Assembly (NCBI GenBank): GCA_904063045.1
Contig: CAJFCJ010000019.1
Span: 1,441,700-1,505,699 of the forward strand
DNA from: Dimorphilus gyrociliatus
Lineage: Eukaryota > Animalia > Annelida
Direction of reading: 5' to 3'
DNA length: 64,000 nucleotides
Shown piece by piece: positions 8,063 through 41,014 of the stretch; within the stretch, counting starts at the first letter, position 1; each line of letters begins with the position of its first letter. The notes beneath the pieces were generated by a model. The model searched no databases, was not told the origin of the DNA, and worked only from the letters and a program-made list of their open reading frames with translations. The position numbers and the translations under genes were made by a program.

Positions 8063-11000
8063 TTATTTAACTGTCTCTTGCTCTAGTTTCTTTGCCTGCA
8101 TAAAGAACCGATTAACATTCTCTGCAAGAGCCATCGCTCCTACGTTCTTCTCTCTTTCGCGGCACTCTTTCTTATTACAATTAACGATCCAATTTTCCAT
8201 GATATCCCTCTTCAAGTTGATAAATTTTGTTCTAATTATACTCCAGAAGGTATTCGACTATATATAATCATACAATAATACTATAAGATAAATTTTGCTA
8301 AATTGGAAGAAAAGAAAATTATCTTACATTTTTGCCACTTGTTTTCTTGTAAATAATGTCTAGTACCCATTCCAAAATTACTATACCGAAAGCTGTTCCG
8401 CATCCAATGAATAATATCCAAAAAGCCCCATAAATTGATGGAACGCCAATTTTTACGGTATTTGAACTTATATCTCCATTGGATTTATCAAGACAGATTG
8501 AAGTTTTAGAAATCCATCTGTCCCCTATCGCATCTACTTCACCACTCTCTCTGATATTATATATACTAATTGTTAATTCTTCAACATATGGAGAATCTTT
8601 TGGTAAGGCTATACCGTAACCCATATTTTCAAATCCACTTTCGACAACTTTTAAACTGCATTCTTGTCCTAATGTATAAAATATAATAAGAAACACTATC
8701 TGTATTTACTCTATATAGCATTTAATAAAATATTTATAACTACCTTTCCAGTATTGAATGGAAGGCATATCGTAAATGAACGCGAACGACCCATTCTCAT
8801 GGATAGCTTTGTCAACACACTCCTTTGCACTTTTACAATAATTGTTCTTCTCCCTCATTCTCTTACTCATTTTTCTGACATGTATAAATAATTTATATCA
8901 CACTATTTTTTCAAATTTATCCTATTCATATTACTTTTTACGTACTTGTATGGTTCTCTAGCTGATGAATCAAAAAATGATTGGACGTGATGGCCTGAAA
9001 CCGTTCCATAATTGACATCGCCTCTATTTGCTAACTCGGAAATCGCTTTTATTTCATCAGCCGATGATTTGACGGTTAAAAAGGCTGCTAAATTAGCCGT
9101 GTAAGACTGGATGATAATTAGGGCACCAAGCCACCATGCTCCGGCTACTATTTTACTAGATATAGATCTTGGGTGCCTTTCACCTCCCTGTTCGAACAAG
9201 GATGCTAAGCTCCATAGAACAGCATTATGAACACTCATTGTATTCTTATCTTCTAACCACTCTCTTTCTTCCCAATAATCAATTGTGCCATCCTCATTCT
9301 TATCCATAGCTTCCAGTTCACCATCATTCATAACTTGAGATTTTCTACCTAAACAATAGAGTAAACAGTCGATTAAAAATTTATAAACAACACAAATTTA
9401 ATTCAAGGGATTTACCATGATGCCCATAAGGGCTAACTTTTTCAATCAAACTAATGACAAGTCCAAGAATAATTGCAGTAAGGAGAGTTAATACCCAAAG
9501 CCTATTCGTGAAAGGGTTTAAAAAAGACCAAGGATCGTAAGACGTTTCTTTACTTGAACCCAGAAGTATACCCATTTGAAGGTCTCTAAAAGGCTTTGTA
9601 AATTCAATATGTTGCTGTCTTTCATATGTTATACTAATCGCTCCTATTCCCATATCAGCTTTCTATATATAATGGTAAACGAAAGGAAAATTGAGACTTT
9701 TAACGGAAATAGATCACCTACGGCTTTTCCACTGTCGTCAACTATTAATTCACCCATAAGGCCATCCCATTTTTCCGTTTTTCGGTCAAAAACCCCATAA
9801 TAAGAAGCTTCATGCAGAACATAATTAAATGAGTGTATCTTGGATAATTCATTTAATAAATCGATTGCGAAGCCAGTGAAGCATTCGTTTCCGGTACATG
9901 TCGATTTTGTGGTGTTATTTGGTCGAGTAATGAATATAAATGGCGGATCCTTTAAAAGTTTGATAATTAATCTCTCTTACTATTACTATTTTTATTACTA
10001 TCTCTATTTTTAGTTTTAAAATCAAACCTCCACAACTGCAACCCTTAAAGTTCGATTAACTAATTCTCCCACGTAGTCTCTTATATCCATCAAAGGTGTT
10101 CCACCAGAAACCGTGACTCCAGTAGCATTAATTTTCATTACCTCGTTATTATCATTGTTCTTTGGTGACGTCCATTCACCAAACTTTTAAAAAAAGATAA
10201 TCTAGAACAACTATTTATACCATAATTTGATATAAGAAACCTTTTCCCACCCTTCCTCTCTTAAGAAGACATAATCGTACGATGAACTGTATGGTGATCC
10301 ATTCGAATTAAATCTAATACGTTTCTTGGAAACTCCAGGAATATCTGTCTGCAATTTTTTTTCCAGAAAACCGTTAATTAAATCTATTTTAAGCTGTTTA
10401 AATAGTTATTATTACTTTTTTCAAAGCGTCTAACATCTTTTCCCCAAATTCCCATTGTTTAGCAGGTATTTCAAAACAATCTAATTTGGCAGTTGTTAAA
10501 TTTTCACTTTCAACTTCTAAGAGTCGGTGTAAAGCATTTGCTAATACGTATACTGAATCATAGAAAGCTGCGGCGTATCCCTTCAAAGAAAAGTATAATA
10601 ATAGAATCTATTTGACATAAAAAAGAAAGCTTCTTAAACATACAGAGAGAAAAGAATCATTTCCCAAGTGAAATTTCTCTTGTAAAAATATAGATTTTTC
10701 CGGTAATGCCGGTCTTAAGCCAACTAGACCTTTAAATTCTCTCCTATCCAGTCCTTTGAAAATATCCTAAGAAGAGAATACCTTTGTTTATGCTTATATA
10801 TTATCAGGAAAAAAAACCATACGAACCGATTCAGTTACTCCATCTGTGCCTATCCAAAGCCACCCTTTCGCCAACATGTTCAATTTCTGAGCTTGAACGA
10901 TTATTTCAACAGCATGATCCGGCAAACAGTGTAAAATGACAACTTTCGCACCTATCATTAAATAGTAGAATACTCGAAATTGTGTATATAATTGAGTTAA

Positions 11001-21107: not shown

Positions 21108-24100
21108 TTAGCCTTCAAGATTAGTTGAGGTAATCTCTAATATGGCTTCAAATGAAAAGGGAACAAATAAATGACCAGCCCCTTGATAAAATTTTGACTG
21201 AAATTCGATCCAATGCAGACGCAAAGCGTGAAGGAAAGCCGAGAGTCCCTCCATAATTAATAAAACTCCCACGGTAAGCAGTGCAAAGGTTGGAAATATT
21301 GCAGAGAGCATTATTGCTCCAGCATATCCTGGTATCATTGAGAATCCCATTCTCAAAACCATAGACCATAGAACTTCTGATAGTTGAGCATGGGCCAAGG
21401 ATAAAGCCCACAATCGTAGATAGGAAGCGGTGTGGCTTACGCAATTAAGGAAATATTCTATACTGTGGATTGCTTGATGAACAAGAATATCCCCAAGTTC
21501 GAACTGAAGAAATAAAAAAAGGTAATTAGAATTGTTACAGTAATTGAATTGAAATTGAAGGCAAAAGCTTGAAAAAAAAACAACAAATCAGAGATTCAAC
21601 AAACACAATTTTATCATAGATTAACAAACAAGATGAGAACAACTGTGCATATCTATCAGGATAAAAACCAAGGAAAAGCAAAAAAATTTGTCATAAATTC
21701 TCTTTCGACTCTCCAAATACTATTAGAAGTCATATTACATAGGCAAAATAAAACTATTACTTGAAAAAGATGTTGAAAGAGCGTTTATAAATAGCTAGAC
21801 AATCTTGGTTCTATTACAATATACTAGTTGATACATGCAAACTATTCAGTGCAAATAACAAAATATATTTCCTGCTTCCCGAAAGTTTTACTATATCTTT
21901 TTTATAAAAACTTTTTGCTCACTTTAAGAAACAAAGATGAACTTTTATTCTTAAAGCCAATTAGCTTTCTCAAAAGCGACTAGTATAGATGCAAGCTTAA
22001 AAAAAGTAAATTTTCCTATTCTCTATTAAGGAAGCAGAAAAGAAAAACAACAAAAGTTAGGAGAGTATGACAGATTGAAACCAATCGGAGGCATCTATCA
22101 CCTCTTTTTCAACCGTTTCTTCGTTGTTCATCTGCTCGTCATGTTCGCCACTCATTTCAACGTTATCGCCTGTAACTAAATCGCCAGAATTGACGCTTAA
22201 GTGAGCTTGATCTCTCTTTCCTATTCTTCCGCCGGTCCATTGTGAGATTGCTTCTTCAAACTTTTTCAGCCAATTTAAATAAGCAGAACAGGAAAAAGCA
22301 AAAGCATTAAAAATTTTAAACTGTCACTCTGATTCTACATATAAATTTTTTCCGAACTATAAAAAAAGAGATGCACACACAGAATTCTTTTTTTTTTTCT
22401 AAAAAAAATTTAATCTTGCAGGTTCAGAGTGTCAGGTCACCTTTTCTTCTTCTGTCGTATGATTTTCAAGTAATGGAGCGTCAGATTCGTCGTGATGAAT
22501 TAGAGCAGCTTCGTCATCGTCTGTATCGTTGGCTACTGTTCTTGCTACATGGGTAACTGGAGCCCTACGCTTCTGCTTTTATATAATTTAATTTATTATA
22601 AACTTCGATGAGAAATTCTAAACTGATCATCAATACAAGGCTTGTGTGCTATTAATGACCTTTTATCTGACTACTTAGTGGATATATTCTTATTTGAAAT
22701 GTTGGAAAATAAGAAATTAAAACTAGAAATTTACTCACATCAAATTTTCCTTTGTGTTTCATGTAGAGTAAAATTGGTTTCAAACACAAATGCCATGGAA
22801 TGCATAATCCAGCTAAAATAACTAAGAACGACTCTAAGCCTTGCTGTCCAGGATACCAAGGTACGACAGCGCAAAGAGTCTTGTTTTTATCCAACTTCTG
22901 ATATTTAAACATTACCATATTAATTAAGCCAATCAACAATGATGGAGCACATGCAGAGTCCGCTGGTGTAATGTAAATCCATTTGGCCATAATAATACAC
23001 ACCAAATAAAGAAAGATTGCACTTAAGAATAAAACTTGGGGAATAAATTCACAGAAAATATTCAAAGTGTTTCCAAAATATCTATGATTTGAAAGTGATA
23101 ATATTACACCAGAAAACATATGAATAATTCCCAAAATAACTGATGTCTTCATTTTGAAAGTGTTCAAAAATGATATTTTATTTAGCGACATTTGCCAAAC
23201 AGGATCCATTCCATACCAATATGGTGATCCAGACCATTCAGTAGTATTTGGATCTAAAGCTCTAGTGCCTGTACTATTTGTAAAATCATTAACTGTCCAC
23301 CCTGACCCAAATACGTTGACAGATTTTGAAAAGAAGTCGTTATAGACAAATCCAGTGTACATAGAGAAGATACCCATAAGCATAATCATATATCTTCCGC
23401 TAAAAAACATTCCAAACATTTCATCTTCGTGTGCTTTTTTGGCAATAAGCTGTCTTTCGCGCAGAATCATCCAGATGGCAAAACATAGCATTATAAGTCC
23501 ATGGCCAAAGTCTCCAAACATGACAGCAAATAAGAATGGAAAAGTAATTATTGTAAACGGAGCTGGATTAACTTCTCGATAGACAGCCACTCCGTATGCA
23601 TCGACAATTGACTGAAAGCCGCTTGTAAATTTATTTGTTCTGTTGTAAGTTGGAGGACTCTCTCTAGTTGCCATCCTGTTCAAAATACTTGGAACTGAAG
23701 AACCAGATGCTTCTGTTCCTCGTCGTAAACCTAACTGAATTCGATCCAAATCTGCTACAGGACACCAACACTCAGCAATTAAGCATTTCTGAGTTACGTC
23801 CAAATTAAATAGATTTAAAGTCATATAAATAGCTTTGATTTTTCGAACTTTTATCAGCCACGATCTCATATTCTTGGCAGCAGCAACAAGAACTCTATGT
23901 CTATGATCCCTGGTTTGCTGAAGGACTGTGTTCAAATCTTCAATTCTTGTCATTACTCCGATTGCCATCTCTCTTCTTTCAGCAGGTGTTTCGGGACAAG
24001 GATACAAAGTTGCCCGAAATCCCTCGCATATTTTCTTTACTCTTGTCTTCAATTGATCCCCTTGAAAGAAGATGATAAAAACAGATTTATGTACTTGGTC

Positions 24101-25934
24101 TCCAGTTACTGGATCCTCCAATGGAACATCCATATTAGCTTGTTTCAAGAAGACATTTCCACGGCAAGCTCTCCAAAGCATTCTCTCAAATGCTGGCATT
24201 CTTTCTCTGACAATTACTCCAGCCACAAAACTGTTATTTTTTAAAATTTTAATAACAAAATTACATTAATAGTCTGCTAATATCCAATCAAAATCTTATG
24301 TAAAAATTCAAATATCCTATTAAGATAAAGCAGGAGATACTACTTTATCATTATTATTTTCTTTTATTTGAAAGTTCTTCACTTACGACAAATGACGCGA
24401 AGCTTCATGATAATTATGAGCTAAACTGGTACGAACTTCCTCAACAAGACTAACTGTTCGAGAATGAATATTCTGCAGATATAAATCTATTTTACGAAAA
24501 CACGGAGAAAATAGAAATTTCTTTCCTAACTTTCAATTGGGTTAAATGTTTTAATTTTGAATTATAATTAAAAAATTTTGCCTTGAATGAAAACTGGGAT
24601 AAAGAGGTCATGTAATATTTATTAAAGAAGCTCCGGGTTATTTGACATCACGCATTCATCATATCTTCATAGCGTATGAATATACCTACCCTAATCGTAA
24701 TGGCTGTTGACCAGTAGTTGGAGCTCTAACTTCTTCGCCTAGGAGTCCAACTGTTTCTTCTGCCATGTTAGGATCAGTCATCGCCTGGTATGGGTCAATA
24801 GTCGCATGAGCCTGTTGGTCAGAATTTTCCATCCCTCACTACACATGCCTCAAATACACACATGCTTAGCAGCTAAATAGTTTCTTTTTTTGTTTTAATT
24901 ATAGGTTCTAGTAAATTATAAATCAATAATATATAGAGAATTCAAGAATGAAGAAATGAGAAAAAAAAACAATATCTAGCATGCAAGTGTATATCTAAGG
25001 CGTGAAAAAGTGATTCTTATACTAACAACATCACCTCACAACTACTAGTTTTAAATGTTTTATAAGTAGCTTGATAATAATGAGTCACGGTAACTAAAAG
25101 TTTGTACTTTAAAAAGAAATATTAAATGAATGATATAATCAAAGCTAAAAATAGATCAAAATGAAATTATCTAAATGAATAAAAAGCATTTGAAAACTAT
25201 TCATTCCATGCATCACACACTCCATACCCCACCAAAACAAACATACCAGGTTTTTTAACAGCAATATGATACAATGTAAATGGATTAAAAGGTTTAAAAA
25301 CTACTTACCTCTTCGAAGAAACCTTGAGTTTTCCTAAGAATATGCTTTAATTCAGTTAATTCTAAGTAATTTCTCTTTAGAGCTTCAGCATTTGAATTCA
25401 CCTAAAACAATGAAATAGTACTATTATTTAATATCTCTGGAAAAATAGATCGAAATTTTTTATCAACTAAAACGAATAAATTTTATCTTACTTCTTTCAT
25501 TTCATTTTCTAATTTTTCAAAAGTAGCTTCCAAATCGATCATTTCTCTTGGAGCTGGAGCTTCCGGTAAATCTCCTGTATCAAGTTGAGGAATGTTGTCT
25601 TTCTCTAGCTCTTTTTCCAAAAATCTATTTGAGAAATCATTATTTAGAGAACAAATCGCGGAAAAATTTTTTCTGAATACAAACCGAAGCTTTCTCTCCA
25701 TTTCATCACATCTTCTAACCTCATTAACGAATTTTCGTTGAAATGCACTAACGTCCGGATTTAACTGAATTGATCGAAACTTTAAATATCTGTTAAGTTA
25801 ACAAAGTGATCCCTTACATCTCTAAATTGCACCAAGCCCAACTCTCCTAGTTCCGAAACACAAGCATAAGCTGCTTCAGACTGTAGGAAGAGCTGACACA
25901 GAGTCATTTCCTCACTTCTGTATAAGGATCCCAT
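21108..25934 (-). CDS. ATP6V0A1: V-type proton ATPase 116 kDa subunit a (a1-like)
   Basis: [102 protein letters not shown] (essential Arg), [15 protein letters not shown]. Includes alternative exons (see findings). Confidence 0.97.
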
Positions 25935-26529
25935 TTTGCAGCCTTATGAATCTATGAAAAAGTGTTTGGTTAAGATTAACAAGCCAAATTTAATTTCGAC
26001 AAATTATGAATTTACCTTTATTTTAAAAGAATATCATATGATTGACAAATATCTATTCAATATGGCTGCATCACATGACACTGAATTCTATGAAGGTATC
26101 ACTAAAAGTTATTTTCACTGGATGCGAACCATACTATTTGATTCTTGCAAAAAAACGTTTATGTTAAAGCTATTCTGAGCAAGCAACACTACCGACAACC
26201 ACAAATTTACATTTTTTTTTACTGATTAAAGTAATCAATAGTTTTTTCTAGTAGTATATTCTATTTTTTTTATATTTTGTAAATTCGTAAGAAGATATAG
26301 TAATTTAACTATATAAATATATACAGTATATAAATTTTATATAATACATATCTAAATTAACTTTGAATTTTTTTTAATGGCTATTTGATAGTTATTTTTT
26401 TATTTTTTTGTCCAGTCAGTTCCGCTACCGACCTGATTTAAGTCATACCGCCTATCAGAAAACGATCTGGTCTCTAGTATTGATCTGTACCTTTTGCATT
26501 CCTTCCCTCTTTTATTAATTTATTAAGAT

Positions 26530-27743
26530 ATGAGTTTTGTACACGAAGATTTTAATTCAGATGACGAGAGTAGCGATGAAGATTACATTCCTGGAGGTAA
26601 TATTATCTGAAAATAGTTCTTGTTTTCGACTGGTTCATTTAAACCGTTGGCAATAATTTTTTTTAAAACACTAGGTGCAAATTCAGAAGGTGAAAAATCA
26701 TTAAGTGAAGAAGATTCTGAGGTAGATGGTGATGATGTAAATACAGGAAGCAAAAGAAAAATAAAGAAAAAATCAAAGTCTTCAAAGTAAGTCGTGAACA
26801 GTATTGCGTGATTTGTAATTTTGAAAATTTCTTAAAAATAAAGATAGATAACTATTTATTTAAAGAGTTATTTTTTACGGGTAAACTTATTTAATCTTAT
26901 ATTTAGAAAATCTAAACTCGAGGAAAATGAAGAGGAAGCTACCGAAAAGAAATCCGTTGAAGATCGAAGAAAGATGGGTAGTATGCTTTTTGACCAATTT
27001 TTCAAGGGCGCAAAAGGTCAGTCAAAGAGTAAGGATAAATCTGAAGAGGAAGCAGAAAATAATTGTGTCAAGAAAACCGGTGAAAAGAAACTAGAGACTA
27101 CTTCAGTTAAAGCAGATGAAAAATTAACTGTAACTAAAGTATTCGATTTTGCCGGGGAAAAAATAACGTTTGTGTTTCTGAAGTCAGCATTCAATTGTTA
27201 AATAATCTTTCTTTTGAACTTAGCGTTAAGGAGGAAGTTAGCAAAAATTCGAAAGAGGGAAGACTTGAACAAAAGAGAATTGAAGAAGAGAAAAAAGCCG
27301 ATAACAAACCAGCCTGGTCAGTACTTAATAAACCATAATAAATTTATTTATCAGAGTAATGAATTTGTTATTTGTTAAAAAAGGATGAAAAAGACCAAAA
27401 CTAGTCTTACTGATAGGTTAACGTCCATGTCAACAAAGAAAAAAATGACAATAATCGTGAGTTACCTAAAGATTATTTTCATATTTTTAAAGCTAAAATA
27501 TTTTGCAGAATAAATCTAGTATGGACTGGAATGTCTTTAAAAGTGATTCAAAAATCGAAAGCGAACTGGAACAACATAATCGCAGTAAGAATAGGTAATT
27601 AATGGTATTAATATTTTATTAAGAACTTAAATTAATAAGTTTCTTTTCTGTTTTTCAGCTTTGTTCAGAGACAAAATTTCCTTCAAAATACTGATTTAAA
27701 ACAACATGAGTTGGATATCAACGCCAAACTATCAAAAAGATAA
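26530..27743 (+). CDS. CFDP1: Craniofacial development protein 1 (BCNT/Swc5 family)
   Basis: Acidic N-terminus MSFVHEDFNSDDESSDEDYIPG, TVTKVFDFAGEKI, and C-terminal BCNT domain (KSSMDWNVFKSDSKIESELEQHNRSKN...FVQRQNFL). About 6 introns. Confidence 0.9.
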
Positions 27744-28266
27744 TTAGCGTTTTTCTTTTAGAATATATTAACGTTAGACCATTTACCTATGACTTGAAAA
27801 AGTTTAAGATATACATATTACTTTTTGAAGAGATAAAACTATTGTATTAGTAAATTTTGTGGATATTTTTGTTGTTTCATTCATAAATTAAAACCAACGA
27901 CAATGTCAAAAGTTTCTTATATCTGGCAATTTTTCTTCACTGTATATATTTAATATCTACTATCAAGCTATGAATCAGTACAAATTGTTGCAAAATCTTC
28001 ACATTCTGATCATACTTTTTGCTCCCTATTCTTAATTATTCTGTATTTGTTGTCAAATTAACAATTCAAACATCAGTTATAAAGTACATAGACCAAATTC
28101 CAAGAATTTTCATTGACAAGCGGTTATAATCGTAGTCATGTTAAGTAAAAGTTTGTATTTAATTGCTGCCAACAGAGGATATTTCTGTATTTAACGTTAG
28201 AATAATAAACAGGTTATCGCATTTTGTCTGCATTTTTATATTTCTATAACAAACATTATTTACACA

Positions 28267-29468
28267 TTATTTCCTCATCCAATACTTTCTGTACCACATT
28301 AAGAATGTAATTGCAGATAGAGAATACCTAGGACATACAAATTAATACAAGTCAGAAGATTAATTAGTGCTCACCATGTGATTATATAAGAAAAGTGCTC
28401 ATTCCTAAGTGTCACTCTTGTTTGACCTCCAATCGGACCACCTGGTATTGTACTGCCTGTTTAGCGTGAATTGTATTTTTTTAGCTTAACTTTTCAGTGA
28501 AACTACTAACTGTGATCGGCGTCGAGAAACACTGGATCCGTATCAAGATAATAGCTCATTTCTTCTACATCTCTGTTAAACCATTGATTCATTTCTGGCT
28601 TATTCTTTGTATATTGACGCTGTTAAATGTCACTGTAGATTACATTTCTTTTCAAATTAGAAAGAAATACCTTCTCCGTTGTCCGAACGACTCCAGTAAG
28701 AGTAATCGTATTGTTAATTTGTCCTTCAGGCCTCGAGTTTGGCTTAACCTTTCCTCTGGGAACCCATCCTCTATTAATCAAAATGGTAGAGCTGAAACAT
28801 AACATTGAGAACATTGTAGAAGTTTAACATTCACAATATTTATATACTTTCTATCTTCCAAGATAAAAGGGGTAATAATATGAGCGCCTATGGTTGCTGA
28901 GCTGGAACCCAATCCACTACGCTTGCTATCATCACTCTCCAGGCGACTTCTAGGCTCGATGCATATCTCGCGACGGTGATCAAACCTGCCGGTTACTTTA
29001 ACTTTTCTATATTCCATATCTTCCAGTTCTTGAAAGCTTGAAATGAAATGAAAAAAAAATAAAGTTTTCTCTGAAATAATTTTACATACTCTACTGGTAA
29101 TTCTACTGGTTCAGCTGTTGTTCTCTTCTGAAGATCCTCAATAAGACCCAGCTTCCACTTTCTTCTCTGAACTTGCCAAGTTCCTAATGCGGCTGCCGCA
29201 AGCGGTACCACCTAAACCAGATAATATACGTATAACTTTTTAACTATTAATTCACAAAATAAATTATAATTACCAGAAGTGCATAATTACCACCTTCGGA
29301 ATGAGAGGATTGCATAGGATTTACTTTAGATGAAGAAGCATGTTTTGGATGTTGAAGAGAAAATGTTGGACGAATAAAACGTCCCTATTGAAATAATGTT
29401 ATTCAAGAAGGTCACATAGGTAGACTTACCACATGTGTTTTAGAGAATATATTCAAATTTCTTAGCAT
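28267..29468 (-). CDS. SURF1: Surfeit locus protein 1 (cytochrome c oxidase assembly)
   Basis: [66 protein letters not shown]. Confidence 0.95.
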
Positions 29469-29803
29469 TCTTGTACCTTTTACATGAGAGAATATCTATA
29501 ATTTTAAAAGATTTTCATATATTTTGAGTGAATGTTTAAATATATAGAATTTGTTTTTTTTCTTCTATAAACTGGTAACGGCGAAATAAGTAAATTTATT
29601 TAGAATCTCCGGATTTAATTAGAATTTATATAAAAATAATCGAGAAAGTGTTAAGAAAATTTTTTAAAAGGTTTTCATTGATCCAAAAAAGAAAAGTATG
29701 TACTCTTTTTTTAACTATATCACAAAATATCTACGAATTTTTATTTTTTGTATGTTTTGCCAACTGTTCAACGCAGTGCATCAAAACTTCTTGATCAAGG
29801 AAT

Positions 29804-32800
29804 ATGTGCACTCCAGAGCAAGAAATATTAAAAAATTTAACTTCTGCCATCGACCTGTCATTATCTCAAGATTGCTCTGCATCTGATAGACAAAAAGCTT
29901 ATACGGTAATTACAAAATTGTTCCAACAATGGTTGCTTGTAATATCGCTCTTTTAACAGTTTTGTGAAGACTTCAAGGCAAACTATCCCGATAGCACATA
30001 TATTGCTTTTTTACTTGCTTACAATCAAAATCAAGATACACATAGACACTTTGGGTGTCAACTAATTGAGCATACAGTTAAGTGAGTACTAATTGATTTT
30101 CTATGAAAACGTGTTTGCAATGTAATGTATAACTAAAATTTAAATCTCTAATACAGATTTAAATGGAATATTCTTTCTATCGTGGATAAAGTGGGAATTA
30201 AAGATAGGACGACATGTCTAGTATTACAAGTGAATATCTATATTTTAACACACCTCTCTAAACAAATCCTTATATTATATATACTGTATATTTATATATG
30301 ATTTTTAATAGGGTCTTAAAAATATACAAGATGAAAAGGATTACATCAAAGATGCAGTTAGTAGAATTATTGTTGAAATTATAAAGAGGGAATGGCCACA
30401 ACAATGGCCTTCTCTTATGGACGAATTAACTTCACTTTTGCATTCTGGTGTAAGTTTTAAGTTGACTTTTTCAAACTTTTTAATAAACAGTCTTTCTTTC
30501 AATCACTAGCCTGTGCAGGCTCAAGTCGTTCTTCTTGTTTTGTTACGTTTAGCCGAAGATGTTGTTGCTTTACAAACAGTTCAGAGTCAGAGACGCAAAG
30601 ATATTCTTGCTGGACTAAATTCTGAAATGGAAAATATATTCAAATTTATGTTAGCACCACTCCAAAAATATGTAGAAGTCTCGAGCGTTAGTATTTCATA
30701 TTACAATTATGAATATTTATTTAAGAATTGTTAATTCTTTTAGAACATTCCTATTAATTCTGAACAAGTTTATGTTAATACCCTAGTCGCTAGGACCACA
30801 TTGTCAACTTTATCAGGATATGTTGACTGGGTTCCTGTAGAGATTTTATTACTACAAGACAATTTGCTGCTGAAGGTATTTATTGTGTTTAAATTAAAGA
30901 TTATTTGAGAAAAGTTCTTTTTTTATTCAGCTACTGATAAGTCTACTCAAATCTGATCTCAAAGTCAAAGCGGCCGAAGTTTTTCTCTTGATAACTTCTC
31001 GAAAGGTACTGCTTTTTTAAACCATTTAAGTTTTATGTTAAAGATTTTTTTTTTGTTGAAATAAGGGAAGGACTGTCGATAAAGAAGCACTATTGTTTCT
31101 CTTTCGTGAAGAATATCTTCAAAATATTATTGATGCTGTTATGTTTGTAAAATTATCATTTTCTTGCGTTCATCACTGAGATAATTTTATTCTTTAGGTC
31201 TGTAGTGAATAAGTGTAATTTTGAAGATTTCTTTTGCTTGAAAGTACTTTGTCAATCTCTAACTGCAATTGGTATTATCCTTTTATCCTGCTGGGTATAT
31301 TTATAGGAATTTTTATTTAACTTTATCATTATTGAAAGAAATTTCAGAAAAAGGACATTGATGAGACTTATCTTATAAAAGAGTATTTACCTTGTATGCT
31401 GGGATTTTCAACTCATGAAAGTCGGGCGCTATCTTCATTAACTATTCCTTTTTGGAGTGCATTATTAAAAGAGAGCAAAGCTCGGAATATAACCGAGCAA
31501 ATATTTCAGCAATTCGTTAATGCTCTCTATACAAATCTGCGAAAAGTAACAAAGAATATTTAACTTTTACATCTTTTAAAAAACATGATGTTTTTTCACA
31601 GATTGATCAGGAGTTAAATCCTTATAGTTGCTTTGATTTTGATAACGAAATTGAATATATGCACTTTTTTAGTAGTAAGAAATTTTTAAAATCTTAATAT
31701 TTACTATCGTATTTACTCTATATCGATTGTTCCTGCAGAATTTCGAAATGATGTCACTGAATTGATAAGATTAGCTTCATCACATTGGCCTAGGGTTATG
31801 TTTACTGCTGTTGTTGAAATTTTAACAGCTAGAATGTCTCAAGTTGTCAATTATGCAAATGGTTTAAGTGAAGAATAGAAATTCTTATCAAATAATTAAA
31901 TATTATTCTTTTATAGCCAATGAAGTGAATCTAGCTTCGGTAGAATGGGATACAACATCGTGTTTTGTTGATGCTGTTTGCTCGAAGCTGACTCAATCAA
32001 ATGAAATAGATATGCATAAAATTTTACATATATTCAAACAGATGTTGGCATTCAATGTTGTGGTAAACTAATGAATTAAAAAAATATCTCTTATTTATAT
32101 TTTCTTGAAAATTTCTTTTTTTTTGCAGGAAGCTAATATCCTTTCATCTCTACTTTCTTGTATATCTGCTTTCATTCCTTACTTACAATACTGCCCAGAC
32201 GTTGTATTGCCTCTACTTGATAAAGTTAGTTTTCTTTCATACTGATATATTTAGATAATAACATAAAATTATTATATAACTATTACAGACTTTCTCAGCA
32301 GCTGTCTATAAAATAGATGGTCAAACAAAATCAACAAGAAGTAGGCCTGTAAAAAATGTCAGAAGGCATGCCTGTTCTTTGGTTGTGAAAATGTGCAAAC
32401 AATCACCTCATCTATTTTTGGTTAGTAATTTTTTATCATTAAATTCTTTAGTTTTCATTCTGAAATTCTTTAACAGCCACATTTTAATCATCTTTATGAT
32501 CACGTCAAGAGAGTGTGCGCTGATCCAGACGAACTTTCTAAAATGGAAAAATGTGCCCTCACAGAAGCCATGCTACTCTTAAGGTAAACTATATAAAAAT
32601 TTATATATATATATAATACTTGTCATACTTCATTATAAATGCTATATTAATTTCAGTAACGGATTTGAATCGTTTGAAAAACAACGTGACCTAATTGGAG
32701 AAATTCTTAAACCAGTTTACGAATTTTGGAATTCTCCTCAATATAAAGAGTAAACAACTTTTTAATCTTCCATTATTTATCAACAAAAAAGTAATAAAAA

Positions 32801-35036
32801 TTTTTATTTAAAACAATAGATTGATTTATAATCCTGACAAATTTATGGACTCGATTGGTTTAAGCAAACCAGCTGTTGATCCTAGTACAGAAGATATTTA
32901 TGGTATTTTAAGATCACAAGTAAAATATTACCTAAGTGTTTCAAGTTTGAAAAATATTTATTTCTCTCTCACTTCCTCTAGATTATTCATAGTCTCTTTA
33001 CAATTTTTGCCGTTGTTAGAAGGGTAACAATTCCAGCTGATACTAACGTAATTATTTTTTTCTTATATTGACACTATTTGTTTGAATAATAATCAATTAT
33101 TATACCCGTGTATTGAATAGGTAGCTGTAAAATGTGGATATGCTACTGTTGTAAATGGGAAACAGTATTTACAGAATCCGGCTTGCGACCATGTGAAACC
33201 ATTATTAGAAAATATTATCGGCTTACAAAAGTACTAAACTATTATATATAAACTAATACAAAAATGATTATTGTGTTTTTTTTAAAAAAAAAAGAATATA
33301 CTATCAACTCTGGCAACCAGAATATATCAAGCGTCGTCATCCTGATTTCTCAAAAGTATTCCTTTTAAGTGAAAGTGACAGGATGAATATTTTTGGTTTA
33401 TACTAAGAAAATCTCTCTAATATTTTTATATATAATTTGTTAATTTTTCAACAGGTAGACATGTTTATTTATCTACAAATGAATCCCACAATGAAAAAAA
33501 TCCCCAAGATCGTATGCAAAACTTCCTTAAGACTATTCATGATTACAGGTTCAATTTTAAATGAATTTATAGATAACAAAAAATTCATTCAATAATTTTT
33601 TCCTTAGTAATCATATTTTGGGACATTACGGAATATGCTTAGGTCGTAATTTGTATAATATTCAAGGACTATCAGAAGTGCTTGTATCATGTTTGTTTCC
33701 TGGACTAAATTTAGTCACCGATTGTCATGTTCGAAGTGTTATAAGAACTTTTCTAAAGCCTTATTTCTTGAATTGTCCAAAAGAGTATTGGTCAGAGAAT
33801 GTTTTACATATGCTTTCAAAATTTTGTCCTTTCATGTATAGCGTAAGTAATCTATACAATTCTTTGACTTTAACATTCACTTTGAAAATTTCATAATTTA
33901 CAGAGATTGGAAGTTAGATGGCAGAGGATTGATGATTATTCGGAGGCAATGTAAAAATGCTATTTTTTCAAAAATTATAAGCATTATTTATCAAAATTAT
34001 CATATTTTGCAGCAGTGAATGCGAGACAAATACTGAAAGTGAAGAAGTACTTGAGGATCAATTATTACGTTTATTGACTAGGGAATATTTGGATTTGTTA
34101 ATTGTATTATGTTTTTCAAAAAAATTAGCCTCAAATACTGAGACAGAAAGTAAAGAAATGGTAATGGATGAAACTGAAGCAATAAATACATCAAATTCGT
34201 CAAATGATTTAACTGAATGTGGATTGACAATATGCTCAAAAGAGGTTTATAAAAAGCACATATCTTATTTAATATTTTTACTTTTTTATTCTCGAAGGAT
34301 TTATTTCAATGTCTTGTTGTTACCATATTTACAATTATGGTTAAGAATGACTCATCATCTTGCGCTAAATGTGTTAATTTAGCCCAAGCTTTTGTAAAGC
34401 AGATATTCATCAATGTAATTGGAAAAACAATAAATATAGCGATGAAATATATTCTAATACAATGTTTTTTTCTGCAGAATCCCTGTTTATTATCCACTGA
34501 AAGTGTCTGTAACATGTTCAAGTGCATTTTAAATGCCTTACATGTACAGAGTAAAAGTGACGGTATAACTGCTTCACTCGTTATGTTGTCAATGCATTTT
34601 TACACAATTTTGGTATGATATAAAATATTCATTTTTATCACTGAAATTCCATTTTATATTACTTATTTCTTTGATTAGAGACCTCATCATCCTCAATTAG
34701 TTGAAGTAATGAAACAAATACCAAATATTTCAAATGAAGCCTTACTAAACTATGAGAAACATACTATGAATAGTTCTCTAACCGATAAGAAGAAAAGAAA
34801 TGCATTTAAAGTACTAATAAATGGTGCTATAGGGGTAAATAATTAATAATTGTTTGTAAATTCAATTAACTGATTAATTCATATTTTTCAATAAAAAACA
34901 GCATCATATTAGTGAAGAATATAAATTGAAAATCCGCATTGAAGATTTACCCAGACTTGTTGCAAGGAATATGAAAGTTTCTAACACTGAAGATATATCT
35001 AATCTAGGACTTTGTGAATTGTTTTCAAATAAGTAA
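29804..35036 (+). CDS. XPO5: Exportin-5
   Basis: MCTPEQEILKNLTSAIDLSLSQDCSASDRQKAYT|FCEDFK, RHFGCQLIEHTV, KDAVSRIIVEIIKREWPQQWP, LLRLAEDVVALQTVQSQRRKDI; C-terminus ...NLGLCELFSNK*. Over 20 short introns; internal boundaries not all checked. Confidence 0.92.
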
Positions 35037-36075
35037 CGACAGATTATTTATTTATGAATAATTCAACTATAAAAGTTAACAAATACAGGCTTTAAACAAT
35101 TCCTCTTTCTTACAAAATTTAAAAAAGAACTTTATTTGATTATTGATAATCATCACTTAATAATTTGTTTCACATGGAAAGAAATAAAAGAGACAGTCTA
35201 TAGTAATTACGGACCAATACTTAATTATTAATTCAGTATATAAATGCTTCAGAAGCTAGCTATTAGTTTGAAAATTGAGAAATTTAAATGGTGAAAGTTT
35301 TGGTTAGAACTGTTGGTATTTCATTTACTAATGTATTCTAATGTATTTGTTTTATATACTTCAATTAAGGTAGACTTGAAATAAATGTTATGGAAAATAA
35401 TTGACACGTACTATCGCAGAAATCAAACTGCAAATTTATTATAGATAGTTTCGAAAAAACCCAATATTATCAGATAATTTATTTGTATAAACTCAAAAAG
35501 AAACAAAATTTCAATGCTTTCCATTTTAGTAAATTAAAGAACTGATTGAATATATACTCTTTGGGACGGATCATTATCAAAACAAAGAGTATTATGTAAT
35601 ATTATGTACCAAACAAAAGTGATCGTGGATGAGACCAACAACGAAGTTAGCCATTTATAACTGTAAATGACAGAAGAATTGAATAATTATATTCAATTTA
35701 TGAGTAGTTTAAATCTGATAAATAAAATACTGTATTTTAGATTGTTAAGAAAAAAACAATATCATAAGATACCAGCCAATCTTTTTGAAAATAATTAATT
35801 ATTCTAGTAATAACACTAAGAATTTGAATTTGGCACGAATTCACTTGATATCTAGGTTTTTAACTGGCCGAACAAATTTATAACAATTTGTCATTGAGAT
35901 AGAGTTTAACAAACTCAAATGTTTCGATGTGACACTAAGTTTAAAATATGACAAATGTAAATATACTTCAAATGACATATGCAAATGACACATATAAGTG
36001 TAAATAAAATATATACATTATTAAATTTTAACTCAACGTAAAAATATAGTTTTCGATCACTAGAGATCTATTAAA

Positions 36076-37479
36076 TTATCTACTATCGTCTGTCTCCTCC
36101 AAGCATAGATTAATATCAGAATCTTCTTCATAAGTAACATGAATTTCGCTACTATTAATAGTGCCAGACTTTAATTCGTTATCACTTGCTAATTCAATCG
36201 GCGATAATTTTAATTCCTATAGAAAATTTATTTTAACGAATTGTCTTATGTTAAAGAATTCTACCTCTATGACAGGCCTGTCCTTCAAATTTTTGGGAGT
36301 ACTAGTTTTCTGAAAAAAAATATAGAATATCAGCACAATTTGGCATAGTTCCGTCTTAAATACATACTTTTGCAAAGTTTGATAAGGATTTAGCCTTAGG
36401 TGATGTATTGACACCTCCGGAATAGCCCTTAATAGCTGCTGATTTAATCTGATTGCTATTCTCTTTCTGCTGTTCACACTTTTCAAAGGCTGTCATTAAA
36501 TTTCTTCGTGGGTTAAGAGTTATATTTGAAACAACATTTTCGGAAGATAAATTAGATTCAGAAAAAGAAAAATTCTTGTTGTTGTATGAAGAGCGAACGG
36601 ATGAAACTGTCATAAATTTTTTAATTGGAAGCGGCTTTTCATCTTGAGATCTCACCCTCTTCCTCATATGTCTAATCTTTCGAGGCAAATCTTTATCAGC
36701 AATAGTTTTAAATGTCACAGGATGTAAAATAGACAATTCAACTTGAGACTCTCCGTTTGGAAAGCATCTCCTTGTTCTAACTTCAACAGCTATTATTTGT
36801 TTTTTTTTGTTTAAATGCATTATTGGCGGTTCTTCTTCGCAATAATCGAAACCTACAGAGTCATTTTGCTTCTCCGATGGTAAAACTGTTGATATAAGAT
36901 CTCGTTCAACAAATTTATCCACTTTTGTACTTTTGTTCGATGACTCTAAGCTAATAGAGTTATAGAAGGCGTCAGTGTCTGTGCAAATTAAGATATTGTA
37001 AGATTTCGATTTTCAAGAAAATATATGCGTTTTACTGATAGATGAAATGTTTTCTAAATCAACTTCTTGCAGCGGTTCTTTTGATTTCTCAAGCAGATTA
37101 TTGTTAATTTGAAAGCCATCTAAGATTGAAAAAAAAACGAGAGAAAAATATTTATTCTTTCTATATACAGTTCAAAGAGCTAAATTCATAATAACAAATA
37201 TTCTTAAATACATATATATGAAAGATATCCTTAAAGTAAATTACCGAAACTTTGTAATAAATGAAGAGAATGGAGTCTCTCTCTGGCTTTCTCGACGTCT
37301 GGTAAACTTGTTTCATTAAGTTCTCTGGTCAAATCATTTGATAGTAAACAAGTGTTTATTTCAGTTGTATTATTTTCTCACCCCTTTCTTTTCTTTTCAC
37401 CTTGATTCTGTTGTTTATTTCGCCTTGAGTAAGTCACTCTCCTTTTGCGATGTCTTGATATTTGAAACACCTCAGACAT
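36076..37479 (-). CDS. Uncharacterised ~350-aa low-complexity protein with YSR-like, KEN and S/T-P motifs
   Basis: Six exons joined by 48-125 nt GT-AG introns with consistent phases, from MSEVFQISRHRKRRVTYSRRNK to ...LEETDDSR*. No recognisable folded domain. Confidence 0.7.
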
Positions 37480-37726: not shown

Positions 37727-38271
37727 GTGTAATTTTTAAATATTATATGTGTGAATCTTTTAGTGGCATCTTTAATTGATAGATGAGTAAGATAAAGTAT
37801 TAATTATTGACATGAAAATTATTTAGTTAAGAATTTCTTTATGTTTCACACATTTTATGCAATATCTTTCCTCTTCCGACAGTCTAGCAAAGCAGCCAAT
37901 TGAAATTTTAATTAGGGAACAACTAAGTGGGAAAAGAGGGGGAAAATATAACAAAAATAGTTAAAGAATTAATTTTTAACCCTGTTAAGGAATAATAGCA
38001 AAAGTGCTTATATATTAACTGAAATTAATTGAAAACAGAAAGAGTGAAAGATTTTTATGCCTATAATAATAAGAGAAGGTAATTTTTTATTTTAACTTTA
38101 CCCCGAAGTCTACGCCCCTAACAATTGGCAGACTGGTTAGAAAGATCCAATCAGCGGCGTTCAAAGTTTCCCAAAAAGATTTGACATCTCAAGTTCGTTT
38201 AAAACTACATCATTTAGTCAGATTGATCTCTGAGAAGACATCGCTTGGAGTCTATCATAAAAACATAAATT

Positions 38272-39268
38272 ATGAAAGTTCTTTTTAATTTTCTTATTGT
38301 GTCCGTTTACTTTTTGCAAGCGAAAGATGTGAATGCTTTACCATATCAGAAGAAAGTTTCGGCAAAGGAAAGAAGTAATTTCTTAGACGATCGTGAGTTT
38401 AGAAGACTTTTTTTAATGTTTATATAATAATTTTTCATTTAATTTATTTGCTTAATTAACAATTTTGTATATTGTGTCAGTTTTTCGAACGGATTATAGA
38501 GATGAGAAGAAAACAAAGGATGACTATTTCTTAACTGCCCGGCGGCTTTGTAAAATGACATTTAATGTCAGTCCAATGCAATTCTTAAGACGACCCGTTC
38601 AACGTGCCGAAATTAGGGTTTATAAGAACGTCCCTCGTTTCAAATTTTTTAAAAACAGGAGAAGGTAAATATATATATATTCTGTATAATGTTGTTTTTA
38701 CCCCCTCCCCTCTCTAATCTCACATCTAAAACGATATCAACATTTTTATCAGACGAAAACGATACTGGACAGCGAAATTAACCATGCACGAAAGTTCGGC
38801 CTATACTCACATTCTCAAATCTTCGTCGATTCTTGATTCTAAGTAAGTATATAATTTATATATATATATATATATATGTATCTGAGTTAGTTCTCTTTAT
38901 ATATAGGCACCTTATATTAATAATAATAATTACTCTTTCGGATATTTAGACTTGTTTCTATTAACGCTGTCGGTTGGATAAGTTTTGACATAACTCGAGC
39001 ACTAAAGAAATGGATTCGGAAACCTTCATCGAATTTGGGCCTTGAACTATGGGTTGAAGGTACAACCGTTGACAAGAAATCAGAAAAAACTGTTCGAAAG
39101 ACGAATGTCGTTTGTCAAAATCTAGAAAACCCTACAAGACGAGATCCAGTACTCTTTGTTTATCATAAGTTTTCAAAAGGTCGACGTCGGTATAAAACCT
39201 CAGTCAAAAAGTCTAAATATCGAAAAGGACACTCAAAAAACAATGAAGTGTTAAAAAGCCCAAATTAA
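38272..39268 (+). CDS. Secreted TGF-beta-family prodomain-only protein (237 aa)
   Basis: Exons 38272-38392, 38481-38664, 38753-38842, 38950-39268 (714 nt, in frame). Signal peptide MKVLFNFLIVSVYFLQAKDVNA. Propeptide arm motifs FNVS, VQRAEIRVYK, ILDSKLVSINAVGWISFDITRALKKW..PSSNLGLELWV, DPVLFVY. Stop codon before any cystine-knot domain. Confidence 0.8.
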
Positions 39269-39787
39269 ATGTTTTTCTTAGTATTTACAACTACGAGATT
39301 ATCTATTTATATTTATATTTTTTGTGTGAAGTGTTTGTAAAAATGACTGCAGATACGAGTTAAAGGAATACAGAAGTTTTCGGTAACCTGAATCACTCGT
39401 ACATCACGTCAATCATCATGTACGAAACTAATAAATAAACCAGAAATTCGTACGGATTGACATCTTGTCCGATTATTTGAGTAACGATGTGGGAGGGCGG
39501 TGAGCATAGTAATTTCCCGCCTTTTACTTATCAACTGTAGACTGTTTAATGTTTACAGTTGGTAGAATCATATCGACGACTAGGCTCGTTTGCTAATAAA
39601 CATCCGATTTCGTGATTTTAATCCAAATAGCTTTCATCGCACGCTTATTTTAACATACACGCTGACTGATTTCTTACTTATATCTATGTTCAACTATGTT
39701 AGAAATGTGTTTTAACATTATGCTCTTTCGTCGAGTCAGACCTGATGTATTTAACATTATCGATAATTAGTATCTTTAAAATATGTT

Positions 39788-41014
39788 CTAACGCAATTCC
39801 TCAGGACAGTCTGGTTGCTGAGAAGGATGTGCAGCTTGGAACTCGGGAAGCTTTTCAAGATTTTCACCAATTCTAGCGATATTTGGGTAGTTGGATGTCG
39901 GAACTTTAAATCTAAATAAATTTTTTTATAATTATTAATTATTCTTTATGATAAGAAATGGTATAGATTTAGTCAATACCTTTCGGCGTTATAAATCTGT
40001 GGTACCAAGCACAAGTCAGCAATAGTCACAACGTCGCCTACGGAATATTTTCCTGCTGTTTTTTCCAACATTTTTTCCAGATCTGACCAAGAGAAAATAC
40101 ATAAAAAATAAATCTCATGTTTTGAATATAACTTCAAGAAATACATACTATCGAATCCACGTTCTATCCAGTACTTGGCCCACTCAACTTTAGTTTCTCC
40201 AATCTTATTTAAAACTGATAAATTTTGAATAGGTTGAATACCCGAATTGATTGTTTCAGCAAGTGCTCTAGCCTAAATAATTAAGCAATCGCTATATCAA
40301 GCGCACAGAATATTTGATTAAAAAGAGAAAATCATACCTTGGCTCTCAAGACGGGATCTTTTGGCAGTAAATCAGGACCATCTGCAACGGTTTCATCAAG
40401 GTATTCGATGATAGGAATCTACAAAGAGATAAAGTTGAGAACTTTACAGCTTTTTATTTATATAAGTCATTAATAGTTTTCATATTACAGATTGAGTTAA
40501 CGTATGGCCATCAATAACCAATGAAGGCACTTGACGCATTGGATTTATCTCACGATACTCCTCTGTGTTCTATAAGATGTAAGGTTAAATGGATTTAGAG
40601 TCGATGCATGGATAATTTATAATATAGACGTACTTGAAAGCCTCCATCTTTTACTAAATGCACAGGTTTGTAGTCATAATCAATCTTCTTAAGGCTCAAC
40701 GCTAAATGAAGAACAAGTTTGCAAAATTTACAACATCATGATATTTATTTTACAAACCGATCCTAACCCTCCAGGAAGCAGAGCTTCGAAAGTAAGAATA
40801 GAGGACTGGCTGAAAACAATAGCAATGGGTTATATCTATATTATCGCTCGATATCGTGTTACTTTTAATATTGCAATCAAAAAATCTTTAAACGACAGTA
40901 GTTGTCAAAATATTACTTGAAAAATTAGTATTATGCATCTTGTTTAAGATATCATTTTGAGATAGTCGTCATTTATGAAAAAAAACGCCGGTATCAACTT
41001 ACTTTAGTTGCCAT
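39788..41014 (-). CDS. GSTZ1: Maleylacetoacetate isomerase / glutathione S-transferase zeta
   Basis: MATK|[83 protein letters not shown]. Confidence 0.95.

Follow-up and report, generated by a model that had tools for sequence, protein, structure and literature searches.

An annelid gene for a TGF-beta-family arm domain with no growth factor: a probable derivative of Lefty

What becomes of a TGF-beta-family gene that encodes the prodomain of a ligand and stops where the growth factor should begin? This question is raised by DgyrCDS11644, an annotated but unnamed gene of the annelid Dimorphilus gyrociliatus, at positions 38272-39268 (+ strand) of a 64-kb stretch on a 3.79-Mb scaffold (contig CAJFCJ010000019.1); the whole 64-kb stretch was analyzed and is referred to here as the window. 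The genome paper describes a "severely simplified" repertoire of TGF-beta ligands for this species and leaves this gene unnamed (PMC7854359). Most surveys treat Lefty, the feedback inhibitor of Nodal, as confined to deuterostomes (PMC5104510, PMC10763453); its absence has been stated for spiralians (PMC5104510) and for scallops (PMC10763453). Left-right asymmetry in snails and brachiopods is nevertheless under the control of Nodal and Pitx (PMC5104510, PMC10763453). In Heger et al. (2020), a Lefty orthogroup that includes three lophotrochozoan species was assembled in part from genomic open reading frames (ORFs) and is given without domain detail (PMC7535936). We found no description of a knot-less Lefty derivative in the literature. 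On balance, and by a narrow preference, we favor the explanation that DgyrCDS11644 is a maintained gene for the arm domain alone, that it descends from Lefty and that its product would act as an extracellular modulator. The evolutionary part of this explanation is well grounded; the molecular role of the arm-only protein is a proposal.

The gene consists of four exons with GT-AG borders throughout, which join into an ORF of 714 nucleotides (nt) that encodes 237 amino acids (aa), only two of them Cys, and ends in TAA at 39266-39268. The joined model is letter-for-letter that of the annotation. It agrees with an earlier interpretation made from the letters of the window (the sequence-only reading), which had described four exons, 237 aa, a stop codon, two Cys in the whole protein and the ordered motifs FNVS, QRAEIRVYK, LDSKLV...GWISFDITRALKKW...SNLGLELWV and PVLFVY, all of which are found as described. 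Exon 1 (38272-38392) provides the start codon, a signal-peptide-like stretch of aa 1-22 (MK, 13 hydrophobic residues and V-N-A, with a helix at residues 3-21 in the AlphaFold2 (AF2) model) and the start of the mature protein. Exon 2 (38481-38664) encodes the first arm strands, MTFNVS and QRAEIRVYK, an N-x-S/T sequon at N69 (38564-38572) and the start of a basic cluster. This cluster is the polybasic convertase-type site RRRRKR (aa 100-105; 38657-38762, with coding parts 38657-38664 and 38753-38762), which is divided by intron 2 and placed by the model in an inter-strand loop of low confidence (predicted local distance difference test, pLDDT, 59-71). Exon 3 (38753-38842, aa 102-132) ends at a phase-2 intron within ILDS/KLV. 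Exon 4 spans 38950-39268 and opens with the arm core (38950-39190), which comprises GWISFDITRALKKW, SNLGLELWVEG and PVLFVY and closes on a second basic cluster, KGRRR (39176-39190). A basic, disordered tail of aa 213-237 and the stop codon follow (39191-39268; net charge about +7, pLDDT 53-57).

The fold of the encoded protein is well supported by both profile and predicted structure as that of a TGF-beta-family propeptide (arm). The whole protein matches Pfam TGFb_propeptide (PF00688; curated cut-off 25.8 bits) with 59.7 bits and an E-value of 4.5e-16, its residues 40-200 aligning with profile positions 87-239 of 242, and exon 4 alone passes the same threshold (35.8 bits, E 8.9e-9). The growth-factor profile TGF_beta (PF00019) gives no match in the whole protein, so that Pfam returns the combination that had been predicted. 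In the AF2 model, computed from a shallow alignment, the mean pLDDT is 72; the arm (residues ~60-205) lies largely above 80 and the exon 4 core above 90, and the tail (205-237) is disordered. When this model is compared with the PDB by Foldseek, ranks 1 to 40 are all prodomains, of BMP9, activin A, myostatin, TGF-beta1/2 or BMP10, with probability 1.0 and a best E-value of 1e-5, again as had been expected of a prodomain. The alpha1 helix, latency lasso and alpha2 helix that form the "straitjacket" of such prodomains have no counterpart: profile positions 1-86 are unmatched, and the N-terminal region of the model shows only a short helix of low confidence at residues 31-41.

The cystine knot was sought in the 64-kb window (which takes in 25 kb on either side of the gene) and in the 17-kb orthologous locus of a related species, which is introduced below. 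Three-frame translation of 39150-39800 reveals no Cys-rich exon between 39268 and 39790, and a six-frame scan for Cys motifs finds no cystine knot in the window. Neither tblastn with amphioxus Lefty and insect knot queries nor a loose regular expression, which recovers the amphioxus knot as a positive control, finds one in the window or in the 17-kb locus. The absence of a Cys-rich exon before the next gene, as proposed from the sequence, is therefore confirmed and extends to the whole window. This next gene is the convergent GSTZ1, whose last coding exon (39788-39913, - strand; spliced RNA contigs and tblastx) ends with the stop at 39788 that had been noted, only 520 nt from the stop of DgyrCDS11644. 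The window contains no N and is AT-rich (~33% GC). The DgyrCDS11644 protein cannot signal. Because the Lefty-type cystine knot (no dimerizing Cys, CCR...C.G.C pattern) is absent, it is not a Lefty in the functional-family sense and is at most a Lefty derivative.

The gene is transcribed and its introns are removed. In RNA run X6 a 770-nt contig, with a depth of ~53 and no mismatch, joins 38148-38392, 38481-38662, 38751-38839 and 38950-39198, and all three introns are spliced out. Its beginning at 38148 defines a 5' untranslated region (UTR) of 38148-38271, at the start of which stands a CCAAT-containing motif (ATCCAATCAGCG) that is kept in the related species. A contig of data set X3, from a relative ~90% identical in DNA, has introns 2 and 3 removed and carries 39 extra letters that match the end of exon 1; 15 of the 20 listed differences inside the gene fall at third codon positions by our count. 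A marine metatranscriptome (X1) contains a nearly identical spliced fragment that shows introns 2 and 3. As a separate observation, exon 3 (38753-38842) is identical to the X3 relative over 89 nt, compared with 8-11% of sites changed in exons 2 and 4. Constraint in exon 3 seems to extend to synonymous sites, which could reflect a signal for splicing or RNA structure near the split basic cluster.

Is the knot-less form a recent accident or an established gene? A HMMER search of 1.84 billion representative proteins with the 105 aa of exon 4 returned a 77-aa ORF (P0001), by which we found the orthologue on a 38-kb Logan contig of a related species (L001). The two genes have the same exon lengths (121, 184, 90 and 319 nt), GT-AG borders and TAA at the same position. 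Their proteins are 78% identical over the full length, with 91% identity for the arm and 48% for the tail. The ratio of non-synonymous to synonymous substitution (dN/dS) is 0.11 overall at a dS of ~1.1, and 0.04 in the arm (aa 104-212); differences at codon positions 1, 2 and 3 number 44, 20 and 90 (p 2e-11). The introns are only 36-45% identical, with 14-36 gap columns each, and the exons, including the 78 nt of the tail, align without a single gap. Both Cys, both basic clusters and the sequon are conserved (NVS here, NIT in L001), RRRRKR being identical; the signal-peptide-like stretch retains its hydrophobic character at 45% identity. The tail evolves fast (48% of amino acids and 67% of nucleotides identical) and keeps its length, its stop position and a basic net charge of +7 in D. 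gyrociliatus and +5 in L001.

These observations show that DgyrCDS11644 is a real, transcribed, stand-alone gene under strong purifying selection and that its knot-less form is old and selectively maintained. The central claim of the sequence-only reading, a gene of its own with the propeptide fold and no growth factor, is thus upheld by Pfam, Foldseek, spliced RNA and dN/dS, and the search for knot-less orthologues under purifying selection that it had suggested yields one. A recent truncation, for which a dN/dS near 1 had been anticipated, is ruled out by this knot-less orthologue with the same stop at a dS of ~1.1. An assembly artefact is rejected as well, the window being free of N and the relative independently assembled.

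From which ligand does the arm derive? In the HMMER search with exon 4, only two complete ligands (propeptide and knot) reach E 0.001. One is the wasp protein P0003 (XP_044005754.1, Aphidius gifuensis; E 9e-14) and the other P0027, named by NCBI [quoted passage not shown] (E 1.4e-5), so that the wasp protein scores better than amphioxus Lefty with exon 4 alone. Over the whole protein it is amphioxus Lefty that is the closest complete ligand, with 85.5 bits in BLASTP (29% identity over 173 aa with 2 gaps, residues 32-203 aligning with Lefty 77-248), compared to 50.8 bits and 11% gaps for the wasp protein and 27.5 bits for TGF-beta3, the best prodomain by sequence in the PDB, which holds no Lefty. 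The nearest cluster in the ESM-Atlas is "LFTY2 factor (Fragment)" (0.97). The wasp protein itself has an unusual precursor architecture, its 890 aa comprising three tandem TGFb_propeptide domains and then one TGF_beta knot.

Gene structure provides a second line of comparison, for which we reconstructed the exon-intron structure of amphioxus Lefty exactly. Intron 3 of the worm gene (codon 132, ILDS/KLV) corresponds to intron 2 of amphioxus Lefty (codon 177, LLDS/RLI); both are in phase 2 and precede the motif L-x-x-x-N-x-x-GW. Intron 1 has the same phase in the two genes at positions 9 codons apart, and intron 2 of the worm has no counterpart. The knot of amphioxus Lefty has a last exon to itself, behind intron 3, which interrupts codon 256 in phase 2; this codon is equivalent to codon 211 of the worm. 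One codon from this expected last donor, the worm gene has a phase-2 GT in codon R212 (39190-39191), conserved in L001 and read through by the X6 contig. We regard it as a candidate relic of the ancestral donor that would have preceded the knot exon. In addition, a basic cluster occupies the loop after the AE(I/L)RV(Y/F)K strand in the worm protein (RRRRKR), in amphioxus Lefty and in two Lefty-like ORFs discussed below (P0012 and locus L014); in human Lefty this same loop holds the second convertase site, RHGR.

The neighborhood gives a third line, which compares one neighbor gene in one outgroup species. A convergent GSTZ-like gene lies immediately downstream in both, at 520 nt here and at 2.9 kb after amphioxus Lefty, and the last exons of the two GSTZ genes (39791-39913 in the window) are 51% identical by tblastx. 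We take the gene in the window to be GSTZ1, a zeta-class glutathione S-transferase, by the C-terminus of its last exon (F-Q-A-A-H-P...Q-P-D), which is also seen in human GSTZ1. Human LEFTY1/2 (1q42) and GSTZ1-POMT2 (14q24.3) lie in paralogous regions, which fits an ancestral linkage. Regional linkage alone does not discriminate, because human TGFB3 is ~1.3 Mb from GSTZ1-POMT2 on 14q24.3, which makes TGF-beta sensu stricto a regional neighbor too.

Sequence similarity, the shared intron, the loop cluster and the convergent GSTZ gene suggest that DgyrCDS11644 probably descends from a Lefty-type gene. Of the earlier description of its arm as one of the "BMP/lefty/activin" kind, the propeptide arm stands, and the generic label gives way to a specifically Lefty-like one. 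The worm protein differs from amphioxus Lefty in having a basic tail in the place of the cystine-knot exon and no counterpart of Lefty residues ~20-76 (the alpha1/lasso segment and the first RXXR site); in addition, its basic cluster is interrupted by an intron that amphioxus Lefty lacks, and the Cys pair C64 and C187 is specific to its lineage.

The alternative that survives best is an arm derived from TGF-beta sensu stricto, activin or myostatin, for which we see roughly a minor chance. In its favor, the best sequence matches in the PDB are the TGF-beta3 and TGF-beta2 proproteins, and TGFB3 shares the human GSTZ1 region. However, with Lefty missing from the PDB these matches leave out the competitor, and amphioxus Lefty scores threefold higher; no representative of TGF-beta, activin or BMP reaches E 0.001 with exon 4, whereas Lefty does. 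The immediate convergent position of GSTZ, the intron in common with amphioxus and the loop's basic residues likewise favor Lefty.

How a Lefty-type gene might have become arm-only can be outlined from these comparisons. Like amphioxus Lefty, the ancestral gene would have stood next to GSTZ and encoded its knot on a last exon of its own. With the loss of the knot exon, translation would have passed the old donor (the GT at 39190) into the former intron, which would have supplied the basic tail and a stop codon overlapping an ATTAAA signal. The tail is best explained as translated former intron, possibly kept for its charge.

The processing of Lefty suggests what such a protein would correspond to. 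Mature mouse Lefty2 comprises 291 of 368 aa and keeps the arm region (PMC6303393). In amphioxus Lefty the RRRKR site ends at residue 78, so that the mature worm protein starts at about the same place as the long-form mature Lefty, and it ends where the Lefty knot exon would begin; in effect, the worm protein would be the non-knot half of mature Lefty. The word "prodomain" is a partial misnomer for the worm arm, because in Lefty the arm belongs to the mature secreted protein. We propose, tentatively and with less than even confidence, that the protein is secreted, N-glycosylated and cleaved by a furin-type convertase at RRRRKR(105), and that it would then act extracellularly as a non-signaling modulator. 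This role is suggested by analogy with Lefty, a non-signaling inhibitor whose mature form keeps the same arm. A Nodal/Activin-type ligand, a co-receptor or, through the basic tail, sulfated matrix glycans would be the likely partners.

The sequence-only reading had proposed another mechanism, in which the free prodomain binds BMP or TGF-beta ligands in trans, for latency, transport or chaperoning, in the manner of the myostatin propeptide. The fold is that of prodomains which do so (Pfam, Foldseek), the protein looks secreted and is strongly constrained, and arm domains contact the growth factor in solved pro-complexes. The inhibition itself resides elsewhere: in pro-TGF-beta1 and pro-myostatin (structures 5NTU and 5VQP) it is the alpha1-helix/latency-lasso segment that encircles and inhibits the growth factor. 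This encircling alpha1 helix, the lasso and alpha2 have no counterpart in the worm protein, whose alignment with Lefty begins only at Lefty residue 77. Because the alpha1/lasso segment is absent, the DgyrCDS11644 product is, by its predicted domain content, unable to cage a ligand as the latent TGF-beta or myostatin propeptides do. Of the myostatin analogy, then, the shared fold is retained and the structural basis is lost; an interaction with a ligand through the arm may still occur. The cleaved prodomains of TGF-beta1 (LAP), myostatin and BMP9/10 belong to the same Pfam family and, like the worm protein putatively, pass through the secretory pathway; they differ in being made in one chain with their ligand and in holding it by alpha1 and lasso, whereas the worm gene encodes neither a ligand nor this segment. 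Moreover, its closest relative, Lefty, is not of the latency type and retains the arm in its mature form (PMC6303393). We consider the free-prodomain mechanism unlikely.

Equally unlikely, in our judgment, is a role outside TGF-beta signaling, as a matrix or glycan-binding protein with a CBM-like beta-sandwich and a basic tail that would bind sulfated glycosaminoglycans. Exon 4 matches bacterial and archaeal CBM96/disaggregatase repeats with E-values as low as 2e-15, ahead of nearly every animal ligand; Foldseek and the ESM-Atlas also return CBM96 modules, including the chondroitin-sulfate-binding 8wab, and the tail keeps a charge of +5 to +7 in both species despite the drift of its sequence. 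However, the top 40 structural matches are all animal prodomains, the CBM96 similarity is limited to the GW..FD.T...W core, and glycan binding by the worm protein would be hypothetical, with no binding residues identified. CBM96/disaggregatase repeats share with the worm arm this core, a similar beta-sandwich and co-matches to PF00688, and differ as prokaryotic, multi-repeat, enzyme-linked carbohydrate binders; the relation is one at the level of the clan and is silent on orthology. It may be noted separately that exon 4 matches many long bacterial and archaeal repeat proteins (P0002, P0004-P0010 and others), whose repeats PF00688 scores with E-values up to 1e-51.

Several points weigh against the descent from Lefty and against the extracellular role that we favor. 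The case for Lefty amounts to 29% identity, a single intron in common and a single common neighbor; vertebrate, echinoderm and hemichordate Leftys fall short of E 0.001 with exon 4 in the HMMER search, introns 1 and 2 of the worm gene are unmatched in amphioxus Lefty, and the ESM-Atlas search may favor any cluster of knot-less fragments. The idea of a relic donor has to accept a displacement by one codon, in a linker that aligns poorly. Within the D. gyrociliatus genome, the knot search covers this window. The signal peptide, the glycosylation and the convertase cleavage are read from sequence only, and the partner and the activity of the protein are purely what we infer. Finally, the RNA contigs cover neither 39199-39268, with the last 66 coding nt, nor the 3' UTR; the X6 contig stops at 39198, where two of its letters stay unaligned, and X6 depth is nil from there until the 3' UTR of GSTZ1. 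Because the contigs stop before the last 66 coding nt, an alternative 3' end may be compatible with them.

This last point deserves closer attention. The RNA contigs end at 39198 (X6), 39124 (X3) and 39055 (X1), all before the stop codon. At the X6 break (39198-39200) there is no GT at 39199, no run of A and no evident low complexity. The break could possibly be explained by a 3' UTR of very short length, combined with the drop in coverage that is usual toward the ends of transcripts. Candidate polyadenylation signals are an ATTAAA variant that overlaps the stop codon (39264-39269), with a T/GT-rich stretch downstream of it at ~39315-39335, and overlapping AATAAA signals at 39430-39439, where the sequence-only reading had placed them (about 39430); all are conserved in L001. 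The 3' end of the gene is based on genome, annotation and conservation.

Could the gene then be a complete ligand that was modeled wrongly, its knot exon lying beyond the window, hidden by an assembly error or transcribed as a separate piece? The RNA contigs do fall short of the stop codon and the GT at 39190 is in the right phase for a donor. Against this stand the X6 contig, which passes through that GT; GSTZ1, which ends 520 nt downstream on the opposite strand; the absence of a knot within 25 kb on either side in a window free of N; the independently assembled L001, with the same stop and no knot in 17 kb; and a tail without indels beside introns riddled with them. We consider a mis-modeled ligand very improbable. 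A decaying pseudogene of a lost ligand, still transcribed, would suit the severely simplified ligand repertoire (PMC7854359) and the fast-evolving tail, and is rejected as the least probable of all on a dN/dS of 0.11 at a dS of 1.1, an intact frame, exon lengths, stop, both Cys and sequon shared by two species, and spliced transcripts in three RNA data sets.

Is DgyrCDS11644 alone in its architecture? Stand-alone proteins with a propeptide domain are already precedented by the arthropod Anachronism cluster. Anachronism (Ana) of Drosophila is a glial secreted glycoprotein, and proteins of this type are, like the worm protein appears to be, secreted products with a TGFb_propeptide-type domain and no growth factor. 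The ESM-Atlas cluster "protein anachronism", one of those nearest to the worm protein by features (0.95), has PF00688 in 56% of its members and no TGF_beta listed. These proteins differ in being longer (~350 aa) and restricted to arthropods, and the HMMER search with exon 4, which was not a dedicated test, shows no link to them at the level of sequence.

Closer in kind to Lefty is P0012, an ORF of 283 aa that is complete in a single exon and comprises a putative signal peptide and a Lefty-like arm; its stop codon comes 5 residues after the last strand. The contig that carries it is 211 kb long, and the same ORF is present on a second haplotig (L005 10001-10852 and L013 10001-10852; ENA ERZ25069859); no knot is found within 10 kb on either side. 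The haplotigs differ by 4 synonymous and 6 non-synonymous changes, too few to gauge selection. A long, perfect-looking palindrome ~170-240 nt downstream of this ORF (L005 11013-11085) may be the end of a transposon. The loci of Lefty-like ORF fragments (L005, L007-L011 and L013-L015) show no knot in flanks of 0.5-10 kb, several of the contigs being short and one containing a 5-kb intron. Word-indexed protein searches, whether the query was P0012, an alignment or P0041 (which is DgyrCDS11644), returned almost nothing beyond the queries. Lefty-like exon sets without a knot at several other loci are thus only suggestive of a wider family. It is conceivable, as a long shot, that spiralians kept Lefty as a knot-less, arm-only secreted protein which would still restrain Nodal/Activin-type signaling, with P0012 and the Lefty-like knot-less exon sets among its members; it would have been overlooked because searches built on the growth-factor domain cannot see an arm-only protein. 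If this were true, part of the inhibitory activity of Lefty would reside in the arm domain.

The surroundings of the gene were also compared. Its neighbors in the window are ordinary animal genes, among them an Exportin-5 fragment, a V-ATPase a subunit, an NS-type endonuclease and a forkhead gene. The V-ATPase a-subunit gene lies 14 kb upstream in the window (22652-37000 region), on the opposite strand and with the Exportin-5 fragment between; in L001 (3391-8146 region) it shares the strand of the Lefty-like gene and is 4-6 kb upstream of it. This placement is a local rearrangement between the two species. Just upstream of DgyrCDS11644 is a 188-aa ORF without Pfam match (36356-36922, - strand), and the corresponding place in L001 is taken by a called gene of 255 aa (7379-8146, - strand). 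Between the two convergent genes, 39376-39517 (with 39330-39375) is the most conserved stretch of the locus and includes AATAAATAAA. The 142 nt of 39376-39517 are 91% identical to L001 without a gap, compared with 67-86% for exons and 36-45% for introns. Searches of this block returned no Rfam family, no tRNA and no covariation in a two-sequence fold. A minus-strand ORF across it is rejected, as all 5 amino-acid differences between the two species are replacements. The block is probably non-coding, and either a regulatory element or an RNA of no recognized family.

What the locus means for Lefty and its family can be put as follows. A conserved and expressed annelid gene that encodes the arm only, at the position that Lefty has in amphioxus, is a concrete candidate for the fate of Lefty in Spiralia, and an arm-only product explains why searches based on the knot miss it. 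The gene is also a natural dissection of a TGF-beta-family protein: an activity of its arm, if there is any, would reveal the role of the poorly understood half of mature Lefty. If instead the arm is inactive in the pathway, DgyrCDS11644 would be a clear case of a prodomain fold put to a new use outside the cell.

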